64,000 nt of DNA. Origin: Nageia nagi (taxonomy: Eukaryota > Plantae > Pinophyta). The notes under the pieces were generated by a model. The model was not told the DNA's origin and made no database searches. It saw only the letters and a list, made by a program, of their open reading frames with translations. Shown in pieces: positions 2,243 through 51,264 of the stretch. The number at the start of each line of letters is the position of its first letter. Positions within the stretch are counted from its first letter, which is position 1. The DNA is taken from the NCBI GenBank assembly GCA_050084985.1, contig JBITNC010000001.1, positions 138,880,001 through 138,944,000 on the forward strand. Direction: 5' to 3'. Position numbers and translations under genes: made by a program.

Positions 2243-3949
2243 TGTTGGCACCATCGTTTACTTGTAATACATTGTTGAAATCTAGTAAGATTAGAACTTG
2301 TTAATTTATCGTTCTTCAGCAATAGACGTCCACATAAATTTTCTAAACATATTTATTCAATTTTTAGAAAATGATTAAAACATAAAAAATATCCATTAAA
2401 GAATCCTTGATGATGATCCATAAATAATTGCTTTTATTTTCTCATGATATTCCAAATGCCAAGTATATTAGCTCCTCCATTAAGCTACAATTTCCAAAAT
2501 TGACCAACAATTCCATTTTTTTCAATAACAAACCTCATTGGCAACAAATTGTTCCTCCTCGTTCTTGATAAACACGAAAATATCAAGTAATTATTACTTC
2601 GTTGCATAATCTTCCCTTTGGGTGTTTTCTGCCGTAAATAACCGAGTTCAAAATGCAAGGTTTGAAAATTGTGCTATACAAATTTCGTGCCAATGGTATC
2701 GGACCTTTGGGCTGCACGTTTTTATATGAAACATTACCAAAATCAATTGCCATGAAACAATCCCAAGTATTTACAATGAACTTGACTAATTGTCGACCAA
2801 GAAAACGAAGGTCAAACTGACCTACGCCGGAAGAAGCAAAGAAATTTCCAGGCATTCTCCTAGAAAACGTTCCCGAAATTATTGAAAGTTGTTCGAGTAC
2901 GCGGTTGTAGGCTGAATGTAAAATTACGGCTTGTTCATATTACGTATTCACATGGGAATCAAAAGATGGCCACGTCTGTGCAAAAATCAGAATGGCAAGC
3001 AAAAATGCGGCGAACGCATTCTCCCGTTGAAACAAACAAATTAGATTCCATGTAAATGAAAGAAGGAATAGATGTATGGTTGAATGAATGCTGGTCTGCC
3101 TTGGAGTTAAATAGTTTTTGAAATGTATTGAGACAAAATAGTAGAGCAGCATTCCGAAAAAATAGAATAGTAATGAGACAAAATAATATAGTAGCATTCA
3201 AAAAACAGAATAGTAATAAGAGAAAATAATCAAGCAGCATTCCAAAAATATATATAATAGTTAAATACTATTTTTTCCCTTTAGAACTTAAAAGTAGCAA
3301 AAATTTTATGAATCTATTGTATACAGAAAATGAAATATCATTAGATCATTTTTAAGTGATATTTTTATTTCAAAAACAAGGTCTAGGTTAACAGATTGTG
3401 AGTATATTGAGAAGGACTATCAATACGGATTCGTATCAAGAAAAAAGAAAATAAATAAAAGTCATATAATTTGTAATATGGTTAATTAAAATTCAAAAAT
3501 TAATTATATATATTAAAGTGAAAGAAAAATGATTCATGTCATAAAGTTGTAATTTAAAAGTATAGTGAAAAATAATTTATGGGATAATTATTATCTATTA
3601 GTCTAAGTTATATTTAAAAGTTCATCATTAGATGGAATATGTGTTTTTCTAAATCAAAAGTTTTAACAAGAGTTTTTTACTAAACAATCATAAGGTTTTT
3701 CAAAGATGATAACAAAGATAAACTTTTAAAAGGTAAGAAAGATCCTCATGGATAAATCTATAAAAGCTCAAAGATATCCTTTAGTCAAATTAGATATATA
3801 TCTTTGGAGTATATTATTTTTTAACTGCATACAAAAATGACTGAAAACGAGCTCAAAATATGTAAGTTTCATCCCCAATAAAACTATAGACCTGTTTATC
3901 CTTCCCCAAGTTTACCCATTTATTATGAGCATTTACCCACTAAATCCAT

Positions 3950-14002: not shown

Positions 14003-14390
14003 CAGAATAGTAATAAGACAAAATAATCAAGCAGCATTCCAAAAAAACATAATAGTTAAATACTATTTTATCCTAATAGAACTCTAAAATAGTAAAACTT
14101 TAGAGATAATGAAATATGATTAGATCATTTTCAGAATAGTAACAATACAAAATAATCAAGCAACATTTGAAAAAAACATAATAGTTAAATACTATTTTGT
14201 CCGAATACAATTCAAAAGTAGCAAAATTTTTGAGATAATGAAATATCACTAGATTATTTTCAGAATAGTGATAAGACAAAATAATCAAGCAGCATTACAA
14301 AAAAATCATAATAGTTAAATACTACTTTGTTCCAATACAATTCAAAAGTAGGAAAACTTTAGAGAAAATGAAATATCACTAGATCAATTT
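14003..14390. repeat. 129-bp tandem repeat x3 in the LBD upstream region (copy B only)
   Basis: CAGAATAGT.A.AA.ACAAAATAATCAAGC starts at 14003, 14132 and 14261. Copies A and C have a single unit. Confidence 0.85.
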
Positions 14391-15329
14391 CAAGTGATAT
14401 TTTTAATTGAATTATAAATGAAGGTTTAAGTGAACAGATTGTGAGTATGTTGAGAAGGATTATCAATGAAGTATTAGAAACAAGAAAATAAATAAAATGT
14501 AATATAATTTGTAATATGGTTAATTAAAATTCAATAAATAATTATATATATTAAACTAAAACAAAAATGATTCATGCAATAAACTTTTAATTTAAAATTC
14601 TAATAAAATATATTTTATGAGGTAATTATTATTTATTATTTAAAGTTATATTTAAAAGTCTATTATTAGATGGAATATGTGCTTTTCGAAATGAAATATT
14701 TTAACAAAAGTTTTCTATTAAATAAGTATAAGATTTTTCAAAGATGATAACAAAAATAAATTTCTAGAAGGTAATAAAGCTCCTCTTGGATAAATCTATA
14801 AAAGACCAAAGATATCCTAATCAAAGTCAAAGTCATCCAGATTCAAACACCATTAGCAATTGACCTGTTCCATTAATTTTCGACCATTTCTATACTAGAC
14901 TTATATTTCTTCTACATGTTCCATCAATTGACGTACAAGAAGAAAAATCTGACCGGAATCCTCTTGGAAAACTTCGTGGGCTTTACTCATAGTAGGCAGC
15001 TGAGTACGCGTTTTATATTAGGGCTTCTTCAAGCTGTGTGAATACATCGAAAGAGGAAACATGGCTACAACGGGGTGCGGTGTATGTAGAATACAACGCA
15101 AAAAATGCAGCCCAGAGTGCATTTTAGCTCCATATTTTCCATCCAGCAATCCTGAAAAATTTGCAGTTGCCAAAAAACTTTTCGGAACTAGTCACATTCT
15201 CAAAACGCTTCAAGTAGTTTTTAAAAATCTGTTTTTTTGCACATTTGCTTTAGATTGGTTACCTAGTCTTACGTGGTTAAGATTGCAGAGAGTTCCTGTC
15301 GAGCAGAGATCAGATGGTGTGACTAGCAT

Positions 15330-15420
15330 TATTTCGAATCCGGTTTTTCATGAGCTTATAGAATCCGGTTTTATAGAACTTGTTACTGCACTTCTATAAA
15401 AATAATATTGTTTAATTGAA
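15330..15420. other. Templated filler DNA at the LBD/NAC junction
   Basis: AATCCGGTTTTTCATGAGCT (15337-15356) is identical to 16483-16502 and is an inverted copy of Copia RNase H sequence near 16629-16642. It is partly repeated at 15362-15372. CTGCACTTC (15386-15394) and TTGTTTAATTGAA (15408-15420 = 18900-18912) also match the Copia. Confidence 0.78.
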
Positions 15421-15764
15421 AGACGGTTCAGGGGAAAGCACACTGTCGTTTCAAGGTACTTACTGAAAATCAAACCCCCAGGGAAAATGGAGATGATGGC
15501 AGGGAAATCTCTTATGGCAAGACAGGGCTGCTTTTTGTTTGGTTATTGTTGGAAGGATTGGAGTGATGCATTCACTACGTCTTAGAAAGGGGTGGACTTC
15601 GCACTCTCACGAGTGTATTTGGTTTGCTTATGATATTTGGCATCTAGAAGCATTTCTATTTGCTGTATTATCGTCACTCCTTTTCTGAACCTTTTTTCTG
15701 TGTTTCTGCTACTATTGGTATATACATAGTTTGTTACTAGTGGATTTTAAAGGGAATTTCTTGG

Positions 15765-16427
15765 ATGGGGCAAGTTTCTTTACCACCTGGGTTTCGGTTC
15801 CACCCTACTGATGAAGAGCTTTTGAGTTATTTTTTGAAGAGAAAAGTGTGTGGGAAGAAGATTCAGGTTGATGTGATTCCTGAGATTGATCTTTACAAGT
15901 ACGAGCCTTGGAATTTACCAGACAAGTCTTGCCTACGAAGCAGAGATTTGCAATGGTACTTTTTCAGTGTTAGGGATAAAAAGTACCCTAAAGGATCTCG
16001 CTCTAACAGAGCGACAGAAGATGGCTACTGGAAAACCACTGGACGAGATCGGACTGTGTTTTCAACTTCTCGGAAAGTGGGGATGAAAAAGACTCTAGTA
16101 TATCACATTGGACGAGCTCCTCGTGGTGAAAGGACCAATTGGGTGATGCATGAATATAGACTTGAGGACGAGGAGTTGGATGTGTCAACCATAATTCAGG
16201 ACTCTTATGTAGTTTGCCGTGTTTTTCAAAAAAGTGGTCCTGGTCCCAGAAATGGAGAACAATATGGTGCTCCTTTTAGGGAAGAGGAATGGGATGAAGA
16301 TGAATCTTCCGTAGCTGTCACATTGCCCTGTTTAGAAGTGGGTCATGCACGACTTGATCCAAGCTGTTCAACTTTGACAAATGCGAACGAGGAAGATCAA
16401 TATAATAAGTTTTATATTGCTTCCTAA
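15765..16427 (+). CDS. NAC: Intronless, 3'-truncated NAC transcription-factor retrocopy (NAC2/ANAC078-ANAC053/ANAC082-like); 220-aa ORF whose last ~8 codons and stop come from filler DNA
   Basis: All NAC subdomains are present ([67 protein letters not shown]) plus [19 protein letters not shown]. It reads through both conserved NAC intron positions without an intron. Preceded by a ~340-nt leader; no activation or TM domain and no poly(A). Confidence 0.92.
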
Positions 16428-16502
16428 CTACACAAAACATTGAAAAGGGTGATATTCTCCATTAGTGCATTATATTGCTTCCAATCCGGTTTTTCATGAG
16501 CT
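16404..16502. other. Templated filler DNA at the NAC/Copia junction
   Basis: 16430-16456 equals 19467-19493 (27 nt, direct). 16472-16496 is the reverse complement of 16629-16653 (25 nt). 16414-16424 is an 11-nt partial repeat of the latter. Confidence 0.9.
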
Positions 16503-19500
16503 CTTATTGCTTTGGTGAATACGTCGGCAAGCTGACGAGTAGATGGAACATAAGCAGTATTTAAAGTGCTAGCTTGAATTTTATCACGGATAAAATGACA
16601 ATCTATTTCAATATGTTTTGTTCTCTCGTGAAAAACCGGATTGGAAGCAATATGAAGTGCAGCTTGATTGTCGCAATAAAGAGTGGCTGAGTGTTTAAAT
16701 ACCCTGAGATCATGCAGTAAATATTGAAGCCAGGTGATTTCAGATGATGCGGAAGCCATTGCACGGTACTCAGCTTCAGCTGAAGATCTAGAGATAGTGT
16801 ATTGTTTCTTTGATTTCCAAGATATGGGACTGTCACCAAGAAACGTGCAGTACCCAGTGATGGAACGTCTGGTAGTGGGACAAGCACCCCAATCAGAATC
16901 ACAATAGGCAGTTAAAAGAAGTTGGCTTGAGGACGAGAGAAGGATGCCAGAGCCTGGGCAAGACTTGATGTATCGAGCAACATGAAGCGCAGCTTGCCAA
17001 TGTGGATCACGTGGTTGACTCATGAATTGACTGAGAACATTCACAGAGTAAGCAAGATCAGGCCGGGTGATTGTCAAATACAAAAGGCAGCCTACTAAAC
17101 GCCTATAGGAAGCAGAATCTTGTAGTAGAGAGCCATCAACAGGATTTAGTTTGAGATTTTGCTCCATTGGAGAATCACAAGTGCGTCCCCCAAGAGTTCC
17201 AAGATCAGCGAGTATATCCAAGGCATATTTTCGTTGGGAGAGAAAAATGCCCTGTTTAGAGCGAGCAACCTCGATCCCAAGAAAATATTTGAGTTTGCCC
17301 AAATCTTTAATATGAAATTTGGAGTTAAGAAACCGCTTCAATTCAGTAATGGAGGTAGGATCATTGCCGGTGATGATAATGTCATCAACATAAACAAGAA
17401 CAACTGTAAAAGAACTGCCTTGATATGAGGTGAACAAGGAGTAATCTGCCTTAGATTGAGAAAACCCGGCATCAAGAAGAGCTAAAGAAACTTTGGCAAA
17501 CCAATTACGAGAGGCTTGTTTGAGACCGTAAATTGATTTGTTAAGACGGCAAACTCGATGCTCCCCCTATTTGGAGAATCCAGGTGGAATTTTCATGTAA
17601 ACTTCCTCATCTAAGTCACCATGAAGAAAAGCGTTGTTGACATCCATCTGATATAAAGGCCAACCCCGGATGGTGGCAACAGCTAAGAGACAACGCACAG
17701 TATCAATTTGGCAACAGGGGCAAAAGTCTCATTATAGTCCAGGCCCTCGGTCTTAGTGAAGCCCTTAGAAACAAGTCGAGCTTTGTATCGCTCGATGGAA
17801 CCATCTGATCGGTGCTTGATTTTATAAACCCATTTGCAGCCAATAGGATGCTTCCCTAGAGGTAAAGTGGTGAGAATCCATGTATTGGTTTGCTCTAATG
17901 CTTTAATCTCAGCTGCCATTGCTTCCTTCCACTTAGGATGTTTGTTAGCCACATTAAAAGAGGTGGGTTCCTGTTCATTAGAAATTGAGCAAAGAAATGT
18001 ACGATGGGTAGGGCTAAACTTATCATAAGAGAGGAAATGAGAAATTGGATATTGTATACCTGTCAACGCAGGACCACTCGTGGAAGAATCAGTGGTGGGG
18101 TATACATGACCGTAAAATAATCTCGTAGATGGGATGGTGGGCGAGTGGATCTGCTGGATCGACGTGTATCATTAGATGGAGCTGTGGCTTGTGGGCTAGT
18201 GGGTTGTGGGGTGGGTGTAGGAGGTGAGGAGGGTGGGTTTGTGATTTCGAAAGAGGTGTGGGGACTAGGCTTGAGGGTGTGCTCCAGAGGTGGATCATTC
18301 TGTATAGAAGTAGGTACAACCAAAATGGGTGAAGAGGTGGTTATGGAAGAGTAATCAGGAATGGGAAGAGGTAGGACAGTATGTTGTTCTGTGGAATGGT
18401 CTATGTAAGGAAAAATAGTTTCGTGAAAGACAACATCTCTGCTAGAAAAGTACTGATGTGTTTCAAGATCAAAGAGACGGTAGCCTTTTTGTCCAGGAGG
18501 GTAGCCAACAAAAATACACCGTATTGCTCGAGGTCCAAATTTATCATGGTGTAAATGCCCATAGGAGGCATAACAAAGGCAACCAAAGACTCTTAAATGG
18601 TCATATGAGGGAGGCTTTTGAAAGAGGATCTCATAGGGTGTGCAACCATTAAGAATGGGTGTTGGAATGTGGTTGATCAAATATGTAGCAGTGAGAATGC
18701 AATCACTCCAAAAGGAAGGAGGGAGTTGAGCTTGGAAGTGAAGTGCACGAGCTACGTTTAGAAGATGACGGTGCTTTCATTCAACGACACCATTTTGCTG
18801 GGGTGTGGCAACGCAACTATGTTGGTGGAGAACACCATGATTATTGAAAAAGGATTGCATAACCTTGGAAAAAAATTTAGAACCATTATCAGTTCGAATT
18901 TGTTTAATTGAACAATTATATTGAGTTCGAACATGTGCAAAAAAATTGCAGATAAGGCCATAAGTATCAGGCTTAAATTTCATAAGAAATGTCCATGTGC
19001 AACGTGTAAAATCATCAACAATAGTTAAAAAATAACGAGCACCATTGGTTGAACTAGAATAACATCCCCAAATATCGCAATGTATTAATTCAAAAGGTGC
19101 AGTAGTACAAATCGAACTAGATGGGAAAGGTAAATGATGCTGCTTTGCAAGAGGGCAAATATCACAGGCAGAAGGAACATTATTGGATGAAAAAGAGAGA
19201 GTAGTCTGTAATTTATTGAGTCGGTCTGGAGCGGGATGGCCTAATCGTTGATGCCATAGTTCGAATGAAAGGGATGTAGATGTAAGGGCAACATGGGATG
19301 GGTCAAGATCAAGATAGTAGAGACCTCCGCGTTCATGGCCCCGACCAATCTCCTTCCTCGTCGAGAGGTCCTGAAAAATACAATAAGAGGGAAAAAATGT
19401 TACGGAGCAGTTTAAATGAATGGTGAGTTTGTGAACTGAAAGAAGATTATGTTTAAAAGTAGGTGCACACAAAACATTGAAAAGGGTGATATTGGGAGTG

Positions 19501-20808
19501 AGTTTAGATTGCCCAGAACATGTGATTGGTATGAAACTGCCATCCAGTATGCAAATAGATGAGGAAGAAACTGATGGCGGATGGGTATTATGCAATAAGT
19601 CAGGAACAGCAGTGACATGATCAGAAGCCCCTGAGTCTATTATCCATGTGGAAGGTGAATGAACAGATGAGTGTAAGCAAAGAGGCATACCTGTAAGGTT
19701 GGCAATAGGCTGAACAGTTACCACATTCAGCAAGCTTAGCAACCGTTGGTACTGATCAGAAGTAAGAGGAGGTGTCGTAGAAGCCGTGGAAGGAGCTGAA
19801 GATGTGTTGGAATCAGAAGGCCCTTGACATTTTGGTGGACAGTTTCCAAATTTGTGATTTGGTGGGTAGCCGTTCAACTTGTAACAGACATCACGGGTGT
19901 GACCAAGGATATGGCAGTAAGTACAACGCTCCTTGGATTTGTATTTTGGACGTTGATCAGTCGAATGAGAACATACAGCTGCATTTGCATGAGAGCCCGA
20001 AGCAACATTTGTAGAAGAAGCCATCATGGCTGAGCCATCAGATGTAGGTAGAGATTGAAGAAGGCGCTGTGACTCATCTTGTAGGATCAAGGAATAAGCA
20101 CGACCCAGAGAAGGGAGTGGATCCATGAGCAAAATCTGGCTACGAGCATGTGCATACGTATCGCTTAGTCCCATGAGAAATTGCATTAACCGTCAATTTT
20201 GAGAGTGCTCAGCAAAGGTGTGAGCGGCGTTGCAAGTGCATGCAGGCAGAGTGATGTATGTGGACAGTTCATCCCAATAGCTCTTCAAGGTATTGTAGTA
20301 TTTGGCAACATAATCATTATTCTATTGCAGAGTGGCAATCGCTCGCTCCAAAGAGAAGATACAAGGTCCATTGGATGGAGAGAAACGATCATGCAAGTCT
20401 TTCCATATAACGGAAGCAGAATCAGCATAGAGGACAGAGGGAGCCAGATCACAATGGATGGAGTTCAACAACCATGAGGAAACCATGTTGTTGACCCTAA
20501 CCCAAGCAGGGTGGTCTGCGTGGTCTGTTGCAGGTTTGGGAATGGTCCCATCAATGAAGCCTACCTTGTTTTTTGCCGTGAGTGCCATGAGCATGGTGCT
20601 GCACCAGGTACTGTAGTTGCCACCGGTGAGAGGATGGCTGACGAGATTAGTCCCTGGATTATCCGATGGATGCAGGAAGAAAGGATTATTAATGGCATCA
20701 AGGGAGGATGGGATGCTAGTATCAGCCATTGTTAAGAATATAGAAAAGGCAGATCGATTGCAGAGAGTTGTAAGAGGAAGAGAAAATAAATAATTTTTTC
20801 AAATTATT

Positions 20809-20820
20809 GCTCTGATACCA
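20809..20820 (-). promoter_or_regulatory. Primer-binding site (tRNA-iMet)
   Basis: Minus strand reads TGGTATCAGAGC directly after the LTR-terminal CA. Confidence 0.93.
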
Positions 20821-21012
20821 TGTCAAGATTGGAATATTGGTGACAAATTGATATCTTTCTCATTAACATAATATGTACAGGAAAGATGGACTGTACCAAA
20901 TGTAGGAATAGAAAGTGATTCCTTATTTTAAGGAAACCTACAGTAAAAATCAGGAAACTACAGGTGTAAAGATATATACAAACATATACAAAGATATACA
21001 ATGATTCTGTCA
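20821..21012 (-). repeat. 192-bp 5' LTR of the Ale-like element
   Basis: Minus strand TGACAG...TTGACA, bounded by the PBS on one side and by resumption of LBD homology (21013) on the other. No second LTR is available to confirm it is complete. Confidence 0.75.
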
Positions 21013-22439
21013 ATAGGAGATGCGCAGATGCCGTTTGAGGAATTCATGTCGCAGAACGTGGAACCATTGCGGTTATGGGAACTTTAGATGTAATAAGAAA
21101 AGGGTAACTATAGCTATTTTATTTTCCTTTTGGGGGGAACTTGTATTATTACGAGTCTAGACATTATAGAAATAATATTGTTATTCCCTTTCTTTTTATT
21201 ACTCTCTTTTTCCATGAAAGTGATGAAAGAAATTCTTGCGTGTTAAGGTTCGGTTGCGAATAGTGGTCATTTGTAACTTTCACATTAAGATCTCATATGG
21301 TTTCTGTTCACGAACTAGAAACGACCAGCAAATTCCTCACACAATTGAACCAAAACGCGAAAATTTCAGCTTCACTACATACAATAGAATCGGAATATAG
21401 TAATGCAGTGTATATCGTTTTGCTATCAGAACAAACATCTATATCCATGTAAATTTATATAAATTTATACAGAAGATGGGTTATATTGACACCTTTAGTA
21501 CTGTTATTCTACTCAATTTCTTTTTGTTGTCGACTTTTATGTTATTTGCCAATTTCTCGTCGATATCATATATGGTTTCTTTGTCACTGTCTATTAGTCA
21601 TGAATGGGGTCTCAGATATGATCTTGTGAAATTGTTATACTTCTTTCAGCACTCGTTCTTCATGTTTAGATTTCATCCTCTGAAATTATTACCTGCTACA
21701 AGACGTGAAGTAATACGGGAATCAAAATATATGAAGTAATTCTGAAATCAAAATATACTTTAAGAAATTTATGTTCAATGTAAATTATTTTCTATCATCT
21801 TTCATTCGAAAAACCGTATAGCTTAGCTCTAAATACCATGCAAATTGAAATGTTCTAGTAATATTCTTAAGGAGTTGTTTAGGTAAGAGATTTTTTTTGC
21901 CTTGTGTGTACTTTGAGTAAATTTCTCAACAAAGGTTTGACTTCATATTTGGCAAAGCTAAACGTACATATTAGTTTCACGAATTCGCATGAGAAGTTTT
22001 CAAATCTACGTATATTCATGAAGCTAATGAAACATTTTAATTTTACAAATATGTAACACTATCTTTCCTTAAAAAATCTAGGTTTACAAATTTGTTAAAA
22101 TATTATGTCATCTTCGTGAACGATACATTAGTTCCGTGATATATGTAAACTTACATTTTAAAAAACTTTGCCACATATTAGTGAAACTTCCGAATAGATG
22201 AAGGAGAAAAACAATCATGCACCTTCATGAAACTAAAATGTAATATTATTTTCATGACTCAAACCTTTTTAAAAAATAAAGCAGACCATGCTTCTCGAAG
22301 CTACCAACTTTCTGGATGCAAAGTACATTCAATTGATGTAGGCTGGAAAGCTCATTAGAAGCCAATGGAACTCTGAAGAACCTACAACAAATAGTATTTC
22401 ATTCCTTCAAATTTGGCCAAGCTATTAAAGTAAGCATGA

Positions 22440-38439: not shown

Positions 38440-40752
38440 AAGTGTTCTTGTCCAATGTGAAAAAATTTGATCCAATGTTATCTATTTTTCAATTTTTTTA
38501 ATCTTATAGAGAATTATTTGCAACTTATCCCCATATAGTGTTTTTCATAATTCTCAAAAAATAAAAAGTTATCAATAAAAAAGGATACAGTTATATTTCA
38601 AGTACATGAATTAATTTCCTTGAAGAATTGCAAAACAAATTGCATATTTAAAACATACTCTTTCATTTGTAATGGATTTCAATTTCATTAAAAATCTACT
38701 AAAACCTCCATCAAACATATGTTTGAAGTTAATATTTTCTAGTGAAATTCCCATAAATACATACTTGCAATTCCAAGGTTAAGGGTTGTCTTACCTAGCC
38801 TTTCCCAAGCCTAAACTGAGCTTAAATTAGAGGTAAATGCATTTAAATATATCAGTATCCTAATTTGAATTTAAAAATTGATATATATATATATATAGCC
38901 TAAGCAAAATCAAGATCTTGATAAGTACTAGGATCCTGGTCCTAAATCAACATATCAGTATAAACTATGTTAAAATTGATATCCTAATTTTTCTACCATT
39001 GTGTTTAAGTCCTTTGATTTCCTCTCTTAGTGGAATCATACTCTTGCATTCACCCTATGGTCAAAGATGCTTTAAATAGAAAAGCCCAATATCAAATAGA
39101 TGTTGATGATATCAAGTGAGAGAGGATCCTATTTCCCTCTTAATATTATAGGTAGTAAATGAGAGTAGGTATAATAAATAAAATAAAATTCTTTTGAATG
39201 AATATCTCATCATGTGAATCCATAAAGGTATGGAAAAAGACTCTCAAGCATATATATTTGATGATTTAGCAATAATAAATGGATTGACACCATATAATAA
39301 ATTTAGAATAAAATATGCTTTGTTAATATATTAAAAAAAAATTGCATGTTTCTCCCAAAGAGGAACATGATACCTAAGAAACTATAGAGAAAATAACAAG
39401 ATACACCTTGGATAGGAAGCCATTAGAGGGATAGGGACTCAGTCTTAGTATCTCATGTTCTATTGGCCAAAGATGATATGGTATGTTGAGTTTTATATGA
39501 ATATTTTTTGATCTACCAATAGTATAATGTTGAATGTAAATAAAACAACAAAGCTCCCGCAACCTTTACTAGTTCCAGTTAGATTGTAGGGTTTGATGAT
39601 TATGAAATTCATAATAAAGATTGGAAAAATAATATGGTTTCATTCATCAAAATTGAAATATACAATGAATGCATATAGAAAATCCTACATCAATATATTT
39701 ACATTTCATAAATAAGTCCATTCTTGAGAGCACCTCAATGGTACATTTGAATGTGAATGATGTGCAACTACATATTAGGAATGCAAAATACACAATCTAT
39801 TTTTTAAGAAAATATAAAAAACTTAATATATAGTATATTTATATGATTTTGTAAGCTGGCTTATTCCTTAGTATGTTTCAACTAACCTCTAAGGTATTCC
39901 AACTAGTTTCAATTGAAAAGTGGTATAAAACTAGGATGGTCCAAGAGGTAAACCATTCTTGGTCTCTAAAGAGAAGGAGTATTTAAACCATACTTAAACA
40001 TGCCATTCAACTCCAAAAAATATACCTTGTTGGTAACTAACCTCATAATAAATTCTTGTATGCATTTTTCACATAAATCTACTACAAGAAGTAGATTCAT
40101 AGGGAGACATTACGTAGATATCAATCGAATATTGATGGCATCCATTCCCAAGCTCATCCTCTGTTTAGATTTAGTATTGTAAAACTTACATGGGAATAAA
40201 GTTTTATATTTCAAGAAATTATCTACAATGACCATTATATTTGAATAATAATTCATTTCTTGGACCTTTATAATGAATTCAATACTAACTAAGATCCCTA
40301 ATCTAAATAGAATTGGTAAAGGTTAGTGGAGCCCTGCTTGTTTATTTGCATTAAATTTAACATTATTGGTAAATCAAATAACTCTAAACATAATCCTTAA
40401 CATATAATATCATCTTAATCTAATAGAGCCCATTATACGCTATGGTCAAGATCTTATCCCTCCCAAGGTACCCTACCCAAGGTGTATCATGGTATTCACT
40501 CAATAATTCCTTAGGAAATCCTTCCCTCTTTGAATAAAGATAAGGTTTTACAAATATAGTAGGAAAGAAAGTTTAATTTTAATCTTAGTCAAATGGCATC
40601 AACCCTTTTCCTAATATCAAATCATTGAAACCATATATGCCTTCAACTAAGGGTCTCCTTCCATACATTTACAGATTCATAGGATAAGATCTTAATAAAA
40701 AATAATTTCTTTACTTCTTCTAATTATCCTCATATATTACTTTCATTATTAT
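38440..40752. repeat. Second copy of the composite Gypsy-derived block (29825-32128)
   Basis: Colinear homology by eye, including both oppositely oriented integrase-region fragments. Confidence 0.75.
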
Positions 40753-41380
40753 AGGTCTCTTACAATTTACCTGATTTGATGGATTTGAACTTCTCTTTAT
40801 AAGGTAACAACTATTTAGAATTTTCAATCAAATCTTTTGAAGTTTTTTTTTTAATAGGGTAATTTTTTTAAATAAAACAAGTGTTATTTCATAGGATATC
40901 CAAACCCTTACAAGATAGTAGTATCCATATTTTAGTTACAACCTTTAAAGAAGTAAGTTCTAAAGAAAGAAAATTATTTGTTTCCCATAATGGAAACAAA
41001 TAAGTAAGTTCTAAAGGAGTAATTTTAATCTTAGTCAAATGGCATCAACCCTTTTCCTAATATCAAATCATTGAAGCCGTATATGCCTTCAACTAAGGGT
41101 CTCCTTCCATACATTTACAGATTCATAGGATAAGATCTTAATAAAAAATAATTTCTTTACTTCTTCTAATTATCATCATATATTACTTTCATTATTATAG
41201 GTCTCTTACAATTTACCTGATTTGATGGATTTGAACTTCTCTTTATAAGGTAACAACTATTTAGAATTTTCAATCAAATCTTTTGAAGTTTTTTTTTAAT
41301 AGGGTAATTTTTTTAAATAAAACAAGTGTTATTTCATAGGATATCCAAACCCTTACAAGATAGTAGTATCCATATTTTAG
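40574..41380. repeat. Recent ~361-bp direct duplication (40574-40935 / 41020-41380) with intervening filler
   Basis: The copies differ at only ~4 positions. Confidence 0.93.
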
Positions 41381-43830
41381 CTTGTATCCTTCAGCCTATC
41401 TGATGTGGTCTTCAGGTCCTTGTAGGTGACTTATCCTATAACTATTTATTATATAAAAGAACCTCTACTATGAATGCTAATTAGTTCTTTAGTAATAGTA
41501 AATTCACATGATAATAAGAGACCCATAAAAACATCAAGCTATATTACATTTAACTACTTTATTTACAAAATAATTTTATAACTTCACAAAAAAAACTACT
41601 TCAGTATTCTTTAAGAAAATTACTCATGATATTCATCTTAAGTTTTACCCCAAGTGAAGCATCACCATATTAGAATTATTTAGAAACTTGCACCCATCTA
41701 ATTGTAGTTGTTATTAAAGTACTTAATATAAATTTATTTTTCATTGGGTGTTTGTGAACATTAGCTTACTTGCAATAATGTCAAACAAAGGGCTTAGTTT
41801 TGCCTTTCCTTCTAATTTCTTTTGCAATTATTTTGTTGTATAGTGGTATCTCTAATGGTGACCTCATTGAATCCTATAAAAGCCTCCGCTATATTCCCTC
41901 TATTGAAGATAAAGTAAATGCATGTGGTTGTTTATGTTGTTTGAACACTATTCTCTTACTACCTTATTTTTGTTTTTGGCACTTGTCTTTCCTCACCATC
42001 ACATCCCCTTTCTCAACTTGCTTCTGTTACCTTTTTACTTTCCTTTACATGATTTCCATATCACTCCTTATTGTTCCTCTTCTTTTACTTGTACCTCCAT
42101 GGGATTTTATTTGGTATATCTCTAATCATATGAAGCTATATAGGTCAATGGTATGCATGTTTATCTCTTTCTCATAATCTATATCTCTATTTATTAGGCT
42201 TGATAAGTTAATACTATCCTCATACTTTTTGCCCTATGCTTCAAAACTTTCAGCATTCTTAACCTCATTTTTAATGTTTATCAATGGTAATAATCTTATT
42301 TTTCACTATAAGCTACAAAAAAATTTACTATTTAGAATTAGCTTTTGGAACCAAACATTATTAATCAAAAACCACCCTCATGTTTATGTTCTAAAATTCT
42401 ATATGCAAAATTGACAAAAAAAGTGTTCTTTTTTTTCAATTTAAAAAGTAATCCTCTTGCACTTTAAAATTGGAAGATGAGTTTTCAACATGAATTTTAA
42501 TCATTTCAATACTTCTACTTGTAGGGAGAGAGTTCATGCATGGGAAAATATTTCTTAAAAAATTTATCTTAAGTTTTTTTATGAAAAACTTCTCCTTTGG
42601 TTCTAAATAAAGTGTTTATGATTATTTATGTTGCAGCAAAGTGTACAAGATCATAAAGGATTTGATCTCTCATCCACCTATCCCTTTAGATATTAATTTT
42701 TTGGCCATTTCCCACCATCCATCTTTATTCTTAAAACTATGATAAGGAGATCATTAATATAAATGATAATTTTCCTAAAGGAAGAGTTCCTCCTTAGGCG
42801 AATTCTTGCCAAGAAAGAATAATTCATATATTTTGGTTTTAGAATTCTTATTCATCCCATTGTTTCATCCTTGAATATATATTTAACTTGATATTAAAAA
42901 GAAACCAAGGTGTTACTAATAAAGCTTAATTATGAAGTGTTGATAAAAGTGTCGCAAAATTAACAAAAATTTAGATGTATTTTATTTGCATAAATGGTAT
43001 GAAAAAATTAATCTATGTTTAAAATTGTAGTGTTTAAAAGTTTTTAGTTGTTTATAGAAGAAAATAAACTAGCTTTGATATAATCCCTTATATATATACA
43101 AAAATGTCAACAGATATCATTCCCAAATAATTTAGAAATTAAATTCTAATATTATCAATAATATAGATTATAAACTATTTCATAGTTTATAATATAATAT
43201 TTTAGAAACTAATGTTTACACCATATGTATATAAAAAATTAAAAATAATGAATGTATAAATTTAAAACACCGAATATATAAATTTAAAACACCTAATGCA
43301 TTTAAATATATTTATTTGAATACACATCAAATGAATTTAATTACATATTTAAAATAATAAATGTATTGTATAATATTAAATTATATATAAATTAAAATAA
43401 AAAATGTATAAATTTAAAGCAACCAATATTTTAAATATATTAAACTATATACAACTAATATATTTATATCCACATATTATTAAATTTATATTTAAAATAA
43501 TTAATAGAGTTAGTTGTTGATGACAAACTTAGAGACAGAATGACATTAGTTACAATTTTTGATATAAAAAATCAATTACAAATTATATTTTTCTTAGAAG
43601 TGTACTCACATTGAAAAAAATAAAATTAGAACAAAAAAGCAGGAGATTGCTACAATAATGCATAAGCAACTTACAAAAAAATTAGTTTATAATTCTTAAC
43701 ATTATACATCTATAATATGCATCACCATAGAAGGAAATAATATGTAAAAGAGTTTCAAAATTGAAATTTATACTATATTAAATCCTACACTTATTAACAA
43801 ATCCACACACATAAAATGAAAAATTGATAA
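40755..43830 (-). repeat. Repeat X, more diverged copy (2 of 3), interrupted by a patchwork insertion and an AT-rich segment (~43080-43540)
   Basis: Colinear with 44625-46965 and 4140-6420. Confidence 0.7.
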
Positions 43831-44429
43831 ACACTCTTCTATTCTACTTTCTTCTTCGACTTGTTCCTCCCTATGCCATTTTTCTCCGGATTCTTGCTTT
43901 TCTCCGTCAAATTTCGAGGATTATTTTAGAGGAGGCACCCCCTTGCTGCTCTTGAATGGACTAAAGGTTTTGTTAGGGGTTCTGCTTCAGTTCCAGGTTT
44001 TACTCTTACTTCCCCTCCTCCTTAGTATTTGCTTGTTTTCATTTCTATTTTTTCCCCTTGTTAACTATTGTGCGTTGAGGGGTTTCTTATTTGTTCCTTT
44101 GGTGGACTCTTGGTTCTGCTAGTTTTGACAAAGATGTAGGATATCGATGCATGATGATCTTCATAGAAGGATAGCATTGCCATCCACCGGGAGGATTGTC
44201 TAGGGTCGCCTAGCATTTTTGTAGGTTTTGGAAGAGATCCATAGCCTCTTCTTGAAACGACCTCCTCAAGAGGATATTCTTAGCGACGACTTGGAGATTC
44301 AACATCATTCCATATTTATAATAGACACTATCTTGCTAGAGTCCTTCTGGGAGATACCTCTTGTGAGAGAGGAGAAAATTCCATTATGGGAAACAAATAA
44401 TTTTCTTTCTTTTAGCCCATGTTTCAAAT

Positions 44430-46799
44430 TTAGAATGGACATATTAAAGGTCTTTTGGAAGGTTGTTGTAATATTTTAAAATGAAACACCATAGTAGAAA
44501 ATGTGAGTAGTACTTTAAGTTTTTTACATAAGTTCAAATTTCTAAAATGTAAATGTATAGAGTCCTAATACCATTAAAAGAATTCCATATCCCTGTGATT
44601 TTATAAGTTCACTTTTTGGAAGGACTGTTAAAATTTACCCTGCCTTTATGCATTTTCAAATTCTCCTTATAAAGGTAACAACCATTTACGATTTTTCAAT
44701 CTATGCTTTTCAAGGTACTTTTTAATTAAATGGGTAAACATTCTTAATAAACAAGTTTAATTTTATAAGATCTCCAAAACCTTACAAGCTGACAGTATCC
44801 ATGTTTTAGTTTCAACCTTTAAAACATTAATTTTTGAATTGCTACATTCTTCTCTACAGGTATATTATCCTATCACTATTCCTTAGAGAAAATAACTTCT
44901 ACCACCAACGCCAATTAATTCTTCAGTAACAATAAAACCACATGATAACAAAAGTCCCATTAATACATTAAACTATATTGCCTTTAACTACTTTCTTTAC
45001 AAAACAATTTTATAATTTCCCACAAAACCTTCTTCAGTCTTCTTTAGGAAAATTAATCATTATGTTTATCCTACGTTTCCCCCAAGTGAAGGATCACCAT
45101 CTCAGATTTATTTGAAAATTTGAATCCCATCGGATTGTAGTTATTCTTGAAGTACTTATTATTCATTTCCTTTTCATCACTTAACTTTTGCTTACCTGCA
45201 ATAAATACATACAAAGGACTTGGTTGGGCTTTCTTCTTATGCAAATATTTTGTTGTATAATGGTATCTCTATTGGTGACCTAGCTAGAACCTCAAGAAGC
45301 CTCCTCCATCTTCCCTCTAATCAAGGCTAGGTAGTTGCGTGCAGATCTTTGTGTTGTTTCAACTACATACTCCTACTGTCTTGTTTTCCTTCCTCGCACT
45401 TGTCTTTCCTCACCTTAACATCCTCTTCCTCAAATTTTATCTCTTTGCTTTTCGTTTTCATTTCCATGGTTTCAATATCACTGACACTCCTTGTTGTTGC
45501 TCTTGCTTTGCTTGTAGCTTCATGAGACTTTATCTGGTATATCTCTTGTGGTATGAAGCTATATAGGTCAATGGTATGCATGTCTATCTCTTTCTCATAA
45601 TCTATACCTCTATTCTTTGGGCTTTGTAAGTTACTACTCTCCTTCCACTGTTTGCTCTGTGCTATAGAGTTTTCAGCATTCTTAGCCTCGCTTGTATCCT
45701 TCAGCCTATCTGATGTGGTCTTCAGGTCCTTGTACAGATTCCCGTTTTTAAGCTTATCAATGGTAAGAATCTTATTTTTCATTACAAGCTAGAAAAAAAT
45801 TTACTATTTGGAATTAGCTTTTTCAACAAAAATTTATTAATCAACAATAAGCCTCTACATTTACGTTCTATAATTCTATATGCAAAATTGCCAAAATAAA
45901 AGAGTTTTTTTCTTTTCTCAATTCCAAAAGTACTCCTCTTACATCTTTAAAATCGAAAGATTAACTTTTTAACAATTCTCCATTATCCATATTTATTCTT
46001 AAATCTATGACTAGGAGATCCTTATCCTTTTTTGAGATTAACTTTTTGACAATTCCCCATTATTCATATTTATTCTTAAATCTATGACTAAGTGATCCTT
46101 AGTATAGGTGATAATTTACCCAAAGGAAGAACTCCTCCATAGAGGTATTCTTGCAAAGAAAGAATAACTAAGCTATTTTGATTTTAGAATTCTTATTCAT
46201 CCCAATGGTTAACTCTTGAATATATTTAACTTGATATTGTAAAAAAACAAAGATGTTTCTAATAAAGTTAAATTATGAAGTGTCAATAAAAGTATTACAA
46301 AATTTACATAATTGTACATGTATGTTATGTGCATAAATGGTATAAAAAAAATATTATAAAAAAAATAATCTATGTTTAGAATCTTAGGGTTAAAACTTTT
46401 TTAGTAGTTTATAAAAGAAAATAAATTATATTCTATAACACATTAATTGAAATATTTGGATTAGATATATATCTTTTATTAAGAATAAAATTCATCTACA
46501 AAACTCATAAAATTTACAACAATTAGGACTTTGACATTTTCCTATTTCTCACCTTTTTCTTTATCCTACCATAGAACCACCTAATGTTAATTTATAGTTT
46601 AAGTCCTTTCAACTTAAGAATCTCTATCATCTTTCCAAATATGAATGCCACATGTGCCAATTCTACTAGATTATTTACAATTTTCGACATAAACATTCAA
46701 TTATATTTTGTATTTTTCTTAGAAGTATAATGACTAATGATAAACAGCATACTTACATCAAAGGGGTATGAGATTCATACAATTGTATACAAATAAATT

Positions 46800-46960: not shown

Positions 46961-49313
46961 AAAATTAAAAATTAATATTTTTCTTTTATTTTAAAATTTT
47001 AAAATAATCTTTAATACTTTCAATCATGAACATATTTTATTATTTTATTATCTCAACACAGTAATTCTTACTAAATTTGTAGAGTAAAATTAAATTTCCT
47101 AACTTCTCTTTATTTTTATGCCATGTCGCATTCTCCGTCATTCACTGCGCTTAGTTCTTTGACATAATGTCAAATCCAATTGTCACATTGCATTTTCCTC
47201 TGCCACATACGAATTTCAATGATGTCTCTCTCCTTTCTCCGCCCACACTGAAGATAATCAACCCAATGCATGTGTCTTTGATACAAATTTCTTTACCCAT
47301 GATAAATTCAAAAGCGTACTGGTTTATACAAGACACACTTCTTGGGTAGACAGTAATGCATTACTTCTTTACTCAATCAATATTAGCTCATAAACTTTTA
47401 TTATATTTTGAATATGTTCTTTTTATCTTTTATATATATATGGTTAACCTTTTTCATATAAATTTTTGTCAATATTAATGTTATTGGCATCATGTTCTAT
47501 TTATAATACTTGTTGAAATCTAGTAAAATTAGAACTTTTTACTCTATCGTTGTTCAACAATAGGCGTCCACAAGAATTTCATTAGTATATTTATTCAACT
47601 TTTAGAATATAATTAAGAAATAAAAAATCTTTAAATTAAAGAGTCCTTAATGATGATCAATTAATAATTACTTTTATTTTCTCATAATCTTCCAAATGCC
47701 AAGTGTATTAGCTCTCCTTCATTAAGCTACAGTTTTTCAAATCGACTAACAGTTCCATTTTTTCCAATCATAAACCTCCTTCTCACCAAATTGTTGCTCC
47801 TTGTTCTTGGTAAACAACAAAATATCAACTAATTATTATTTCGTTGCGTAATCTTCCCTTTGGGTGTTTTTCTGCCGTAAAGAACAGAGTTAAAAATGCA
47901 AGGTTTGAAAATCGTGCTATACAAATTCCGTGCCAATGGTACCGGACCTTTGGGCTGCGCGTATATATTTGAAATATTACCAAATACAATTGCCATGAAC
48001 TACCGTATATATTTGAAAGATTACCAAATACAATTGAAAATCGTGCTATACAAATTTCTGCCGTAGAGACCGGAGTTCAAAATGCAACGTTTTAAAATCG
48101 TGCTAAACAGATTTCGTGTCAATGGTATCGGACTTTTGGGCTGCGCGTATTTATTTGAAAGATTACCATGAACTTGCCTAATTGTCGACCAAGAAAACGA
48201 AGGTTTACTGACCTATGCAAAGAAATTACCAGTAGTTCTCTTAGAAAACGTTCCCGAAATTATTGAAAGCTTTTCCAAGTAGGCGGTTGTGGACTGAATG
48301 TTATATTAAGGCTTGTTTATATTACGTATTCACATGGGAATCGAAAGATAGCCCAATCTATGCAAAAATGAGAATCGCAAGCAAAAATGCGGCGGATGCA
48401 TTCTCCCGTTGCTATAAACAAATTATATTCAATGTACATGAAAGAAAGAATAGATGTATGGTTAAATGAAAGCTGAGCTACCGTGGAGTTAAACAGTTTT
48501 TGAATTGTATTGAGACAAAATACTACAGCAGCATTCAAAGAAAAATAGAATAGTAATGAGACAAAATAGTATAATATTATTTTAAAAAATGGAATAGTAA
48601 TAAGACAAAATAATCAAGCAGCAGTGGAAAATAAACATAATAGTTAAATACTATTTTGTCCCAATACAACTCAAAAGTAGCAAAACTTTTGTCAATGAGA
48701 AAATGAAATATCATTAGTTCATTTTTCTCCGAGTGATATTTTTCTTTGAATTATAAACGAAGATTTAGGTGAACAGATTGTGAGTATGTTGAGGAGGACT
48801 ATCAATGAAGGATTCGCAAGCAGAAAGAAGAAATAAATAAAAGTCATAAAATTTGTTATATGGTTAATTAAAATTTAAAATTTTATTATATATATTAAAT
48901 TGAAAGAAAAATGATTCATGTAACAAAGTTTTAGTTTAGAATAATAGTCGCAAATGCTTTATAAGATAATTATTATTTATTATTTTAAGTTATATTTAAA
49001 AGTTCATCATTAAGTAAAATATGTGTTTTTTAAAATGAAAAATTTTAGGAAGAATTTTCTACTAAATAATCATAAGGTTTTTCAAAGATAATAACAAAGA
49101 TAAACTTTTAGAAGACAATAAAACTCCTATAGATAAATCTATAAAAGATTAAAGATATCTTAATCAAAATCAAAGTCATCCAAGCACCATTACCCATCAA
49201 CCTGTTCCGTCAATTTGCAACCATTTCTAGACTTATACTTCTTCTACCTGTTCCATCAATTGACATACAAGAAAAATCTGACCGGAATCCTCTTGGGAAA
49301 CTCCGTGGGCTTT

Positions 49314-49349
49314 ACGCGTACTAGGCAGCTGAGTACGCGTTTTATATTA
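49314..49349 (+). promoter_or_regulatory. LBD proximal promoter: inverted repeat ACGCGTACT-N9-AGTACGCGT abutting a TATA-like TTTATATTA
   Basis: Lies 41-76 bp upstream of the ATG at 49390. The distal arm is degraded in copy B, while the proximal arm and TATA-like sequence are conserved (15003-15020). Confidence 0.5.
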
Positions 49350-49389
49350 GGGCTTCTTCAAGCTGCGTAAATACATCGAAAGAGGAAAC

Positions 49390-49880
49390 ATGGCTACCAC
49401 GCCGTGCGCTGCATGTAGAATGCAACGCAAAAAATGCAGCCCAGAGTGCATTCTAGCTCCATATTTTCCATCCAGCAATCCAGAAAAATTTGAAGTTGCT
49501 AAAAAACTTTTCGGAACTAGTCGACTTGTCAAAACGCTTCAAGTAAATTTCTTACAAATCTGTTTTTTCGCACATTTGCTTTAGATTGGTTACTTCGTCT
49601 TACGTAGTTATGATTGCAGAGTGTTGCTGTCGAGCAGAGATCGGATGCTGTGAATAGCATGGTTTATGAAGCGAGCGCCAGGCTCCGGGATCCTATCAAC
49701 GGTTCTATCGGAACTGTAAATCGCCTGAAGAGGAAAATATATGAGTTGGAGTCTGAGTTGGCAGGCAACCTAGCAGAGCTGGAGAGAATGCGCATGAAGC
49801 GAGATAATCTTATGTCTCACCTCTTCCCTTCATATGATATAGGAGGTGCGCAGATGCCCATTGAAAAATTCATGTCGTAG
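49390..49880 (+). CDS. LBD: Class I LBD/LOB-domain transcription factor, copy C: exon 1 49390-49542, intron 49543-49619, exon 2 49620-49880; 137 aa
   Basis: C-block CAACRMQRKKCSPEC (CX2CX6CX3C), APYFP, FG.S, DAVNSMVYEA.AR.RDP..G GAS block and LX6LX3LX6L zipper (LKRKIYELESELAGNLAEL). Phase-0 GTAAAT...TTGCAG 77-nt intron after K.LQ. Confidence 0.93.
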
Positions 49881-51264
49881 AACGTGGAACCATGGCGGTT
49901 ATGGGAGCTTTAGATGTAATAACAAAAGGGTAACTATAGCTATTTTATTTTCCTATTGGGAGGAACTTGGATTATTACGAGTGTAGATATTATAGAAATA
50001 TTATTGTTATTCTCTTTCTTTTTAGTTCTCTGTATTTCGTTGAAATTGATGAAAGGAATTTTTGAGTATAAAGGTTTGAGTACGAATACTGGTCATTTGT
50101 ATCTTTCACATTTAGATCTCACAGTCTTTCTGTTCATGAACTAGAAACGACAAGCAAGTCCCTCACACAATTGAACCTAAACGCCAAAAATTTCAGATTC
50201 ATTACATGCAATACAATCGCAATATAGTAATGCAGTGTATATTGTTTTGCTATCAGAACAAACCTCTGTAGCCGGAAGGAGCCTCTCATATACGTTACCC
50301 GATCGTGTGTGTGAAATGCATATTTTACTTCTCAATTTCTCTTGCTTGTAGAGTTCGGTGTAATTTGCCGATTTCTCTTCAATATTATATGGGGTTTCTT
50401 TGTAACTGTATATTAGTCATGAATGGGGTTTCAGATATGATCATGTGAAATTGTTATACTTCTGTCAGTACTTGTTCTTTATGTTCAGATTTCATCCTCT
50501 GAAATTTTTACCTGTTTAAAGTCGTGAAGTAATTCTTAAATCAAAATATACTTCAAGAAATTTCTGTTCAATCTAAATTATTTTTTAACATCTTTCATTT
50601 CAAAAACCGTATTTTTTTGCTCTAAATACAATGTAAATTGAAATGTTCTACGAGTTGTGTAGGTAAGGGACTTTTCACCCCTTCAAAACCATATGCACCT
50701 TTTGATATTTTGATACATCTGTTGAGAATTTTTGTAGATCTCATTTGCTTTTGGTGTATATTCTAAAATTAATATTGGTTTCGTGAAGAGAATTTTTTGA
50801 ATTTGCACAAATTCATAAAACTAACGAAGCATTTTAGTTTTATGAATATGCAATATAATTTTTTTAAGAAATCGAGGTTCACGTATTCGTAAAACTAATA
50901 TGATGCACTAGACTTTCCACGAATATGTAAACCTACATTGTAAAAATACAACTATGCCGAATATTTGAGAAACTAAGATGTTGCATTTGTTTCGTAAGTA
51001 TGGGAAGGGGAAACCTAAAATGCAATATTTGTTTCATGAATCTATAGACCAAAATTTAAAAAAAAATAAATAAAAGAGGATCATGCTTTCAAAGGCCATC
51101 AACTTTCTAGACATCAAGTATGTTCAATTAATGTAGGCTAGCAGACTCATTTGAAATCAAATAAAACTCTAAAAACTTAGCCCATTCTTTCATTTCACTC
51201 AACTGACCTTAAAACCTTGACCAATGGAGTTCTGAAGAATCTGCAATATGTAATATATCTTTCT

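Follow-up and report, generated by a model that had tools for sequence, protein, structure and literature searches.

Plant retrocopies of genes are usually attributed to the machinery of long interspersed nuclear elements (LINEs) or to template switching within retrotransposons that carry two long terminal repeats (LTRs). Here we analyse 64,000 nucleotides of the Nageia nagi assembly GCA_050084985.1 (contig JBITNC010000001.1, positions 138,880,001 to 138,944,000; hereafter the window, in whose own numbering all coordinates are given), where one copy of a tandem LBD gene, copy B, is interrupted in exon 2 by an insert that joins a NAC transcription factor sequence to a Copia retrotransposon with a single LTR. 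The insert is a scar of chromosome-break repair whose main filler is a fragment of spliced NAC mRNA. It offers a natural case of how a gene retrocopy can arise as filler in the repair of a break, with no poly(A), no target-site duplication (TSD) and no enclosing element, and one in which the template choices of the repair polymerase can be read base by base, including the copying of a junction made moments before.

Templated insertion by polymerase-theta end joining is described at plant T-DNA and CRISPR breaks (PMC10923293, PMC9299229, PMC4912351). As in such filler-DNA repair, target sequence at our locus was deleted with no TSD, microhomology is found at the joins, and short copies of nearby sequence run both ways, with snap-back synthesis and the repeated, abortive use of a single template. 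Unlike it, our locus has spliced mRNA sequence of about 1 kb as its main filler, and some of its templates lie 2.4-4.7 kb from the end, compared with the tens to hundreds of bp that are typical of the experiments.

In yeast, Moore and Haber in 1996 and Teng et al. in 1996 reportedly observed Ty1 cDNA captured at HO breaks. Retrotransposon and cellular cDNA capture at yeast chromosomal breaks is also treated in PMC1976456. Common to these cases and ours is reverse-transcribed DNA, lacking poly(A) and TSD, that was trapped at a break by end joining, and in both settings retroelement and cellular sequences can occur together. The present case differs in being a natural germline event in a seed plant, in its elaborate templated patchwork and in that the Copia element was possibly already resident rather than captured.

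Tan et al. (2016, PMC5131818) describe LTR-mediated retroposition, in which the gene copy takes the place of internal sequence of the element and has an LTR on each side. Our locus shares with this process, exemplified by Bs1 of maize, a partial mRNA copy without poly(A) that is linked to an LTR retrotransposon, and short similarities at the switch points. There, however, the chimera inserts like an element, with a common orientation of gene and element that is itself inferred from the minus-strand switch model, whereas here we find one LTR, opposite orientations, no TSD, a 178-bp deletion and a snippet derived from the chromosomal flank. To the left of the NAC sequence, only about 30 nt of Copia-like filler precede the LBD gene.

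Truncated LTR retrotransposons are said to arise by illegitimate recombination or deletion, as Devos et al. in 2002 and Ma et al. in 2004 are credited with describing. The Copia at our locus resembles them as a one-LTR element whose missing end would have been deleted along with flanking host DNA; it is unlike them in that the deletion junction holds a 1.2-kb insertion that includes a gene retrocopy. The mechanism is therefore anticipated from yeast and T-DNA work, and what this locus adds is a filler that is a copy of a spliced host mRNA and a patchwork that is unusually legible. It is a single locus, probably non-functional.

The interrupted LBD gene

Self-BLAST of the window and pairwise alignments set copy B against an uninterrupted paralogue, copy C (48592-51173, + strand), which served as the reference: 14263-15329 matches 48592-49660 at 85%, and 21013-22377 matches 49839-51173 at 73%. 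Between these two segments, pairwise alignment places 15330-21012 (5683 bp) where copy C has 178 bp (49661-49838), with break points at 15329/15330 and 21012/21013. The same alignment finds no TSD at the ends of the insert, whose flanks (..TAGCAT and ATAGGAG..) have no direct repeat in common. A preliminary description, made from the letters of this DNA, had claimed that 178 bp of LBD exon 2 were replaced by 5683 bp with no TSD, and both kinds of comparison agree with it. The right junction can be placed only to within 3 bp, the ATA at 21013-21015 being found in LBD copy C as well as beside the LTR of intact Copia relatives.

Comparison with copy C also delimits what is left of copy B, all on the + strand. 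An upstream region and 5' part (14263-15329) contains exon 1 (15061-15213), an intron (15214-15288) with its splice sites and the first 41 bp of exon 2 (15289-15329); beyond the insert follow the last part of exon 2, the stop codon and the 3' flank (21013-22377). Exon 1 encodes the N-terminal half only of the LOB domain (positions 2-49 of 99, Pfam), and the reading frame passes from exon 2 into the left filler of the insert, where it meets a stop codon at 15397-15399. Because the frame stops in the filler and the conserved second half of the LOB domain is lost, LBD-B is disabled; the gene has been knocked out.

Directly upstream of copy B lie tandem repeats of about 129 bp that are 86-88% alike (14003-14399). 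Self-comparison of the window further shows a third copy of the LBD upstream region at 3206-3780 (82% to 14261-14818), a counterpart for the upstream region only.

Assembled contigs from four public runs, whose organisms are given as codes, were compared with the window over 15200-21150. In organism B, contigs continue without interruption from LBD exon 2 into sequence like that of copy C at either side of the insert position (15220-15329 and 21013-21150), at 92-93% to copy B. Assignment to copy B or copy C turns on 9 versus 11-12 mismatches, and these contigs could be the empty orthologous site or the copy-C orthologue, and we do not count them as an empty site.

The NAC fragment and the Copia element

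Pfam matches and alignments agree with the layout given in the preliminary description, in which a filler, an intronless NAC sequence in sense orientation, a second filler and an antisense Copia follow one another, NAC and Copia standing tail to tail. The NAC piece, a 966-bp fragment of a NAC53/78-like mRNA (15427-16392, + strand; identified by Pfam and public-run contigs), comprises 5' untranslated region (UTR) at 15427-15764 and coding sequence (CDS) from an ATG at 15765. A complete NAM domain (1-122/122, E 8e-49, Pfam) lies in a single uninterrupted open reading frame (ORF) on the + strand, 15765-16427.

Contigs of relatives show that the parental NAC gene has introns at 15919/21 and 16199/200, positions through which the window copy reads straight. 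A genomic contig of organism D (run X7, 1025 nt) matches 15920-16200 only, and contigs of organism B (X2) exit the window sequence at 16200 into GTAAAT.. and enter it at 16198 from ..CCGTAG. In organism A, whose run X1 is guessed to be RNA, contigs cover 15454-15919 (2 mismatches) and 15921-16227 (0 mismatches); a further contig, 15892-15950, crosses the exon junction in spliced form, and a separate unspliced branch enters at 15920. Since the parental gene has introns where the window has none, the NAC piece is a reverse-transcribed, spliced (processed) copy. The earlier proposal of a retrocopied host mRNA depended on an intron-bearing parent, and the genomic contigs of relatives supply one.

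Neither end of the mRNA is present. Upstream of 15427, parental contigs extend for at least 104 letters with sequence unlike the window, so the copy falls short of the mRNA 5' end in that isoform. The copy ends within the CDS at about 16392-16394, where both an organism D contig and protein homology (..TLTNANEE) stop, and no A-run, hence no poly(A), is found at this 3' end. A LINE-type pseudogene is not what these features describe, given that poly(A), TSD and the 3' part of the mRNA are all absent. Together with the single LTR and the antisense arrangement, the lack of poly(A) and TSD likewise supports the earlier judgement that this is neither a LINE-type retrocopy nor an LTR-mediated one lying within its element. 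As a separate observation, the parental contigs diverge, at 15427 and at 15454, into two distinct upstream sequences, a hint that the parental NAC has paralogues or else alternative splice sites or 5' UTR exons.

Compared with parental contigs, the NAC piece has 2/774 differences, both transversions, and 0/229, with no change of the C>T type. The proteins nearest to its ORF are gymnosperm NACs of the NAC53/78 kind with 480-672 aa. A profile search admitting proteins of 264-840 aa gave identities of 76% for Taxus and about 71% for Araucaria, Cryptomeria and Ginkgo, and the best full-library HMMER match was Taxus at 77%; a search for homologous proteins with the 220-aa ORF returned nothing above 73%. 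Exact-pattern scans of JGI metagenome contigs for NAC exon 2 and for the Copia pol end found no match. An air metagenome, on the other hand, contains 42% of the sequence words of the stretch, which together with the gymnosperm proteins and the low G+C of the non-genic DNA indicates a gymnosperm pollinated by wind. With an intact NAM domain and without the C-terminal half of its 480-672-aa relatives, the fragment illustrates how transcription factor copies that consist of the domain only can originate in break repair. The further suggestion that the insert places one transcription factor under the promoter of another is not supported: the LBD ORF stops 366 nt before the NAC ATG. In the run guessed to be RNA there is no coverage at 15200-15398 or 16394-16508 that would speak for an LBD-NAC transcript.

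The Copia element occupies the rest of the insert on the - strand. Its internal region (16509-20820) was delimited by Pfam domain order, ORFs and contigs of its family, and encodes gag (ATG at 20729 from the ORF coordinates), protease/pre-integrase/integrase, an SH3-like domain and RVT_2, in that order. The 5' LTR (20821-21012, 192 bp, TG..CA), located from the sequence and from contigs in which the two LTRs are collapsed into one, is the only LTR present. Directly after its CA comes TGGTATCAGAGC (20820-20809), the primer-binding site (PBS) for initiator tRNA-Met that is typical of plant Copia elements. The order of the Pfam domains, the PBS and the TG..CA LTR identify a Ty1/Copia element; a label as Ale lineage is compatible with the short LTR, which is not diagnostic of it.

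The element is incomplete, lacking the polypurine tract (PPT), the 3' LTR and a 5-bp TSD. It is cut within the C-terminus of pol (..QLADVFTKA) at 16509, where similarity to the family stops. In runs X1, X2 and X3, from two coded organisms, the collapsed-LTR contigs leave the LTR at 21015 and re-enter the element at 16509 after 74 letters. From these contigs of intact relatives it follows that the window element is without its 3' LTR and the adjacent 74 bp, which hold the PPT as well as the end of pol, and that the outer end of the LTR lies at 21012-21015, where the contigs end. The preliminary description had the element stopping exactly at an LTR-like TG, with PPT and 3' LTR missing; the three runs bear this out, subject to the 3-bp ATA ambiguity. 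The intact family members it anticipated are likewise present among the contigs, which carry the 74 bp and the 3' LTR beyond 16509.

The element has decayed. It contains two in-frame stop codons (20322-20324 and 18777-18779), and single-base length differences from the contigs break its frame near 18114 (2 runs) and near 17706 (4 runs). Against DNA contigs of organism A it shows 46/3963 differences (1.16%). Changes that are specific to the window with respect to all runs number 14:2 in the C>T/G>A direction, with 11/14 in CG/CHG context, a substitution bias that we interpret from its sequence context as the decay of methylated DNA in the genome.

Within the reverse-transcriptase region, three runs give the 33 nt at 17707-17739 a contig depth 10- to 30-fold higher than elsewhere in the element. 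Contigs diverge from the window on either side of this stretch, which adjoins the frame break near 17706; the stretch is shared with a far more abundant repeat or a conserved reverse-transcriptase motif.

Patchwork fillers at the junctions

Two fillers, both described on the + strand, flank the NAC fragment: a left one of 97 bp (15330-15426), resolved by junction alignments and shuffles, and a mid one of 116 bp between NAC and Copia (16393-16508), resolved by self-comparison and repeat search. The clearest pieces are in the mid filler. Its segment 16430-16456 reproduces the 27 nt of Copia 19467-19493 exactly and in the orientation of the element body (27/27, E 4e-10), and 16461-16500 repeats Copia 16625-16664 with errors and in inverted orientation (25/25, E 7e-9). 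The template of this inverted copy of about 40 nt lies just 116 bp inside the truncated Copia end, and the copy departs from native Copia by one substitution and two single-base losses. Ahead of both lies an abortive 13-nt copy of the motif (16412-16424).

The left filler begins with a low-fidelity copy of the mid junction (15330-15361), as alignment with native Copia and the mid filler shows. Within it, 15337-15356 is identical to 16483-16502 of the mid filler (20/20), and in alignment with native Copia the two fillers have in common a CAT-for-CAC change, two 1-nt losses and the string GAGCT(C)TTAT. Because GAGCT(C)TTAT exists only at the mid junction, the left filler was copied from that junction and not from native Copia. 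A stuttered partial re-copy of the motif follows (15362-15379), so that across the fillers a single motif is stuttered four times, at 13 nt and then at 31-40 nt. We also considered whether 15328-15356 and 16474-16502 could be a template-switch duplication in a plus-oriented chimeric element, and rejected this reading, as neither copy continues into native Copia.

Further along, 15395-15412 copies the LBD 3' flank at 21165-21182 (17/18), a match reached by 0/200 shuffles. A possible copy of Copia 18899-18912 at 15407-15420 overlaps this snippet by six bases, and its 14-nt match was reached by 11/200 shuffles. Since the snippet comes from the chromosomal 3' flank of the LBD gene, at least the left patchwork would have been built in the nucleus at the locus and not in a particle. 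Three pieces (16393-16411, 16457-16469 and 15380-15394) gave no match above shuffles when compared with Copia, NAC, both LBD flanks and the 178 bp of copy C; they may derive from the missing 74 bp of Copia. In all, the filler pieces with no template assigned are 15380-15394 and 15421-15426 on the left and 16393-16411, 16425-16429, 16457-16460 and 16501-16508 in the mid filler.

At its outer edge, the left filler is joined to the LBD gene via a GCAT microhomology (15326-15329). The locus thus combines a 178-bp loss, no TSD, the GCAT join, snippets of 13-40 nt and stutter, the features of break repair with templated filler. Scars of the polymerase-theta type are recognised by short templated pieces that run either way, by stutter and microhomology, and by frequent copying errors. 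We accordingly read the fillers as the scar of microhomology-mediated end joining of this type, with the enzyme deduced solely from the scar pattern. The preliminary description had attributed the junctions to end joining, and the templated fillers, the GCAT microhomology and the 178-bp loss strengthen that attribution.

One event or two

We favour, with middling confidence, a history in two steps: a normal Copia insertion, and a later break that was repaired with NAC cDNA. Integrase would first have inserted the Copia element into exon 2 of LBD-B, fixing the LTR end at 21012 and disabling the gene, and the element would then have decayed in place as methylated DNA. A double-strand break near the 3' LTR would have followed, with resection removing about 440 bp: the 3' LTR, 74 bp of internal Copia and 178 bp of the LBD gene. 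The ends would have been rejoined by cycles of few-base annealing, short error-prone copying and dissociation, using as templates the fresh NAC-Copia junction, the LBD flank 4.7 kb off and Copia sequences at distances of 0.1, 2.4 and 3.0 kb from the broken end. In the course of this, a 966-bp NAC cDNA without either mRNA end would have become lodged between the left and mid patchworks. Every template identified is in cis, to the right and no more than 4.7 kb away. The two-step history accounts for the exact LTR terminus at the right junction, since integrase produces such ends, and a single deletion of about 440 bp over the boundary between LBD and 3' LTR explains both the loss of 178 bp of LBD and that of the Copia 3' end. 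The sequence comparisons establish the anatomy, the processed state of the NAC piece, the copying of the fillers from templates and the point at which the Copia is cut; what we infer is the order of events, the enzyme and that the NAC template was free cDNA and not an RNA that was copied during repair of the break.

The anatomy of the insert fits one event as well as two, and age is the only evidence that separates them. The preliminary description had expected the two parts, if captured together, to be of similar age; instead, a Copia with about 1.2% differences, a C>T bias and four frame breaks stands beside the NAC counts of 2/774 and 0/229. At the C>T-type rate of the Copia element, about 7 such changes would be expected in 774 NAC bases and 0 are seen. 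The decay of Copia set against the nearly unchanged NAC favours a Copia older than the NAC capture.

Several points weigh against the two-step history. The age contrast is soft, with family contigs representing a majority sequence and NAC counts that are small; a decayed source copy mobilised in trans would give an identical age picture, and a NAC piece that remained unmethylated would blur the argument. The position of a retrocopy 116 bp from the Copia end is suggestive of a common origin by reverse transcription, and the ATA overlap at the right junction, with a 2-4% probability by chance, hints at a microhomology join over an integrase join. The template of the LBD-flank snippet would have lain 153 bp from the break in a single event and 4.7 kb from it in two steps. 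An allele with a complete two-LTR Copia in LBD-B was not seen, and no contig of the four public runs crosses 15329/15330, 16392-16509 or 21012/21013, where the assembly stands without independent confirmation.

A single event is a possibility that we hold only tentatively. A break in LBD exon 2, or a one-ended attack by integrase, would have caught Copia and NAC cDNAs together by end joining, the former incomplete (with an intact U3 end and no 3' LTR), the latter partial, and both from the same cell or particle. NAC indeed adjoins Copia, with Copia-derived snippets on both of its sides; since the mid junction served as template for the left filler, a single repair episode made the junctions at both ends of NAC; and the LBD-flank template lies only 153 bp from the right junction, where 3 bp of possible microhomology meet the LTR. 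The Copia part starts at nucleotide 1 of U3 and stops 74 nt before the PPT, which is as far as an incomplete plus strand would reach, and the opposite orientation of NAC follows if synthesis primed by the Copia end copied NAC mRNA toward its 5' end. Family contigs are found in the run guessed to be RNA, so the Copia family may be expressed. A single event nevertheless requires a cDNA whose LTR end survived to the last nucleotide while 264 bp were lost at the opposite end, and a source copy that already bore about 1.2% deamination-type changes, two frameshifts and two stops; and among plant LTR retrotransposons, as a matter of general knowledge, aberrant one-LTR insertions are far rarer than truncations after insertion. 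Of the co-capture put forward in the preliminary description, the reverse transcription of a NAC mRNA and its end joining with filler stand, and the same particle or single event is only a possibility, a resident Copia explaining the anatomy equally well. If a single event were nonetheless the true history, it would directly couple the replication intermediates of retrotransposons to gene retroposition outside the integrase pathway.

Unlikely, in our view, is that the whole insert was one cDNA, Copia in sense and NAC in antisense, formed when the 3' end of an unfinished Copia plus strand jumped to a co-packaged NAC mRNA, that entered through a one-ended integrase reaction at the LTR with end joining opposite. 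If true, this would be a route to retrogene birth at the plus-strand stage that explains antisense one-LTR retrocopy composites.

We consider it improbable that the NAC piece, or a NAC-Copia composite, was copied at the DNA level, by synthesis-dependent strand annealing from an existing pseudogene or chimeric element, which entails no reverse transcription at the time of repair. Break repair in plants is generally known to paste kilobase-scale ectopic DNA as filler, and a second patchwork in the window, described below, includes a 362-bp copied block. The NAC piece is, however, 99.7-100% identical to intron-bearing parental contigs, leaving an older pseudogene intermediate unneeded, and a second context for the NAC-filler junctions was not seen in the runs, whose coverage is too thin to exclude one.

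Similarly poor prospects attach to the making of the insert as one continuous cDNA inside a particle, where the Copia plus strand would have halted before the PPT and switched templates repeatedly, including to a co-packaged NAC mRNA. Such switching would account for the tail-to-tail orientation, for the exact U3 start with PPT and 3' LTR absent, and for a NAC copied from mid-CDS toward its 5' end. Yet the left filler holds a snippet of the chromosomal LBD 3' flank and copies the complement of the finished mid junction, both implying synthesis at the locus, and the snippets, with 3 errors in 40 nt and 5 in about 30 nt, are far less faithful than copies made by reverse transcriptase. The NAC copy also halts at 15427 though parental transcripts go at least 104 nt further upstream, and the objection from age applies as it does to a single event.

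We give hardly any credence to an assembly artefact, a chimeric join of reads from a NAC gene, a Copia copy and the LBD gene: three insert junctions are uncrossed by contigs of the four runs, but misassembly does not produce spliced gene copies, microhomology joins or fillers templated from both neighbours and the flank, and organism-A DNA contigs at 15520-15843 (0 mismatches) carry the window letter at 15666, where the parental transcript contig differs.

Apart from the NAC-Copia insert, the window, whose non-genic DNA has 25-29% G+C, contains a second patchwork at 40950-41424. In it, 362 bp are copied from 40574-40935 (98.9%), 34 nt repeat 44379-44412 exactly in inverted orientation and 45 nt reproduce 45690-45734 exactly, and the templates of the 34- and 45-nt pieces lie 3.4 and 4.3 kb to its right. 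Because this patchwork uses them too, cis templates at kilobase range are usual here and not peculiar to the Copia case; two such scars in 64 kb show repair in this genome using templates in cis at distances of several kb.

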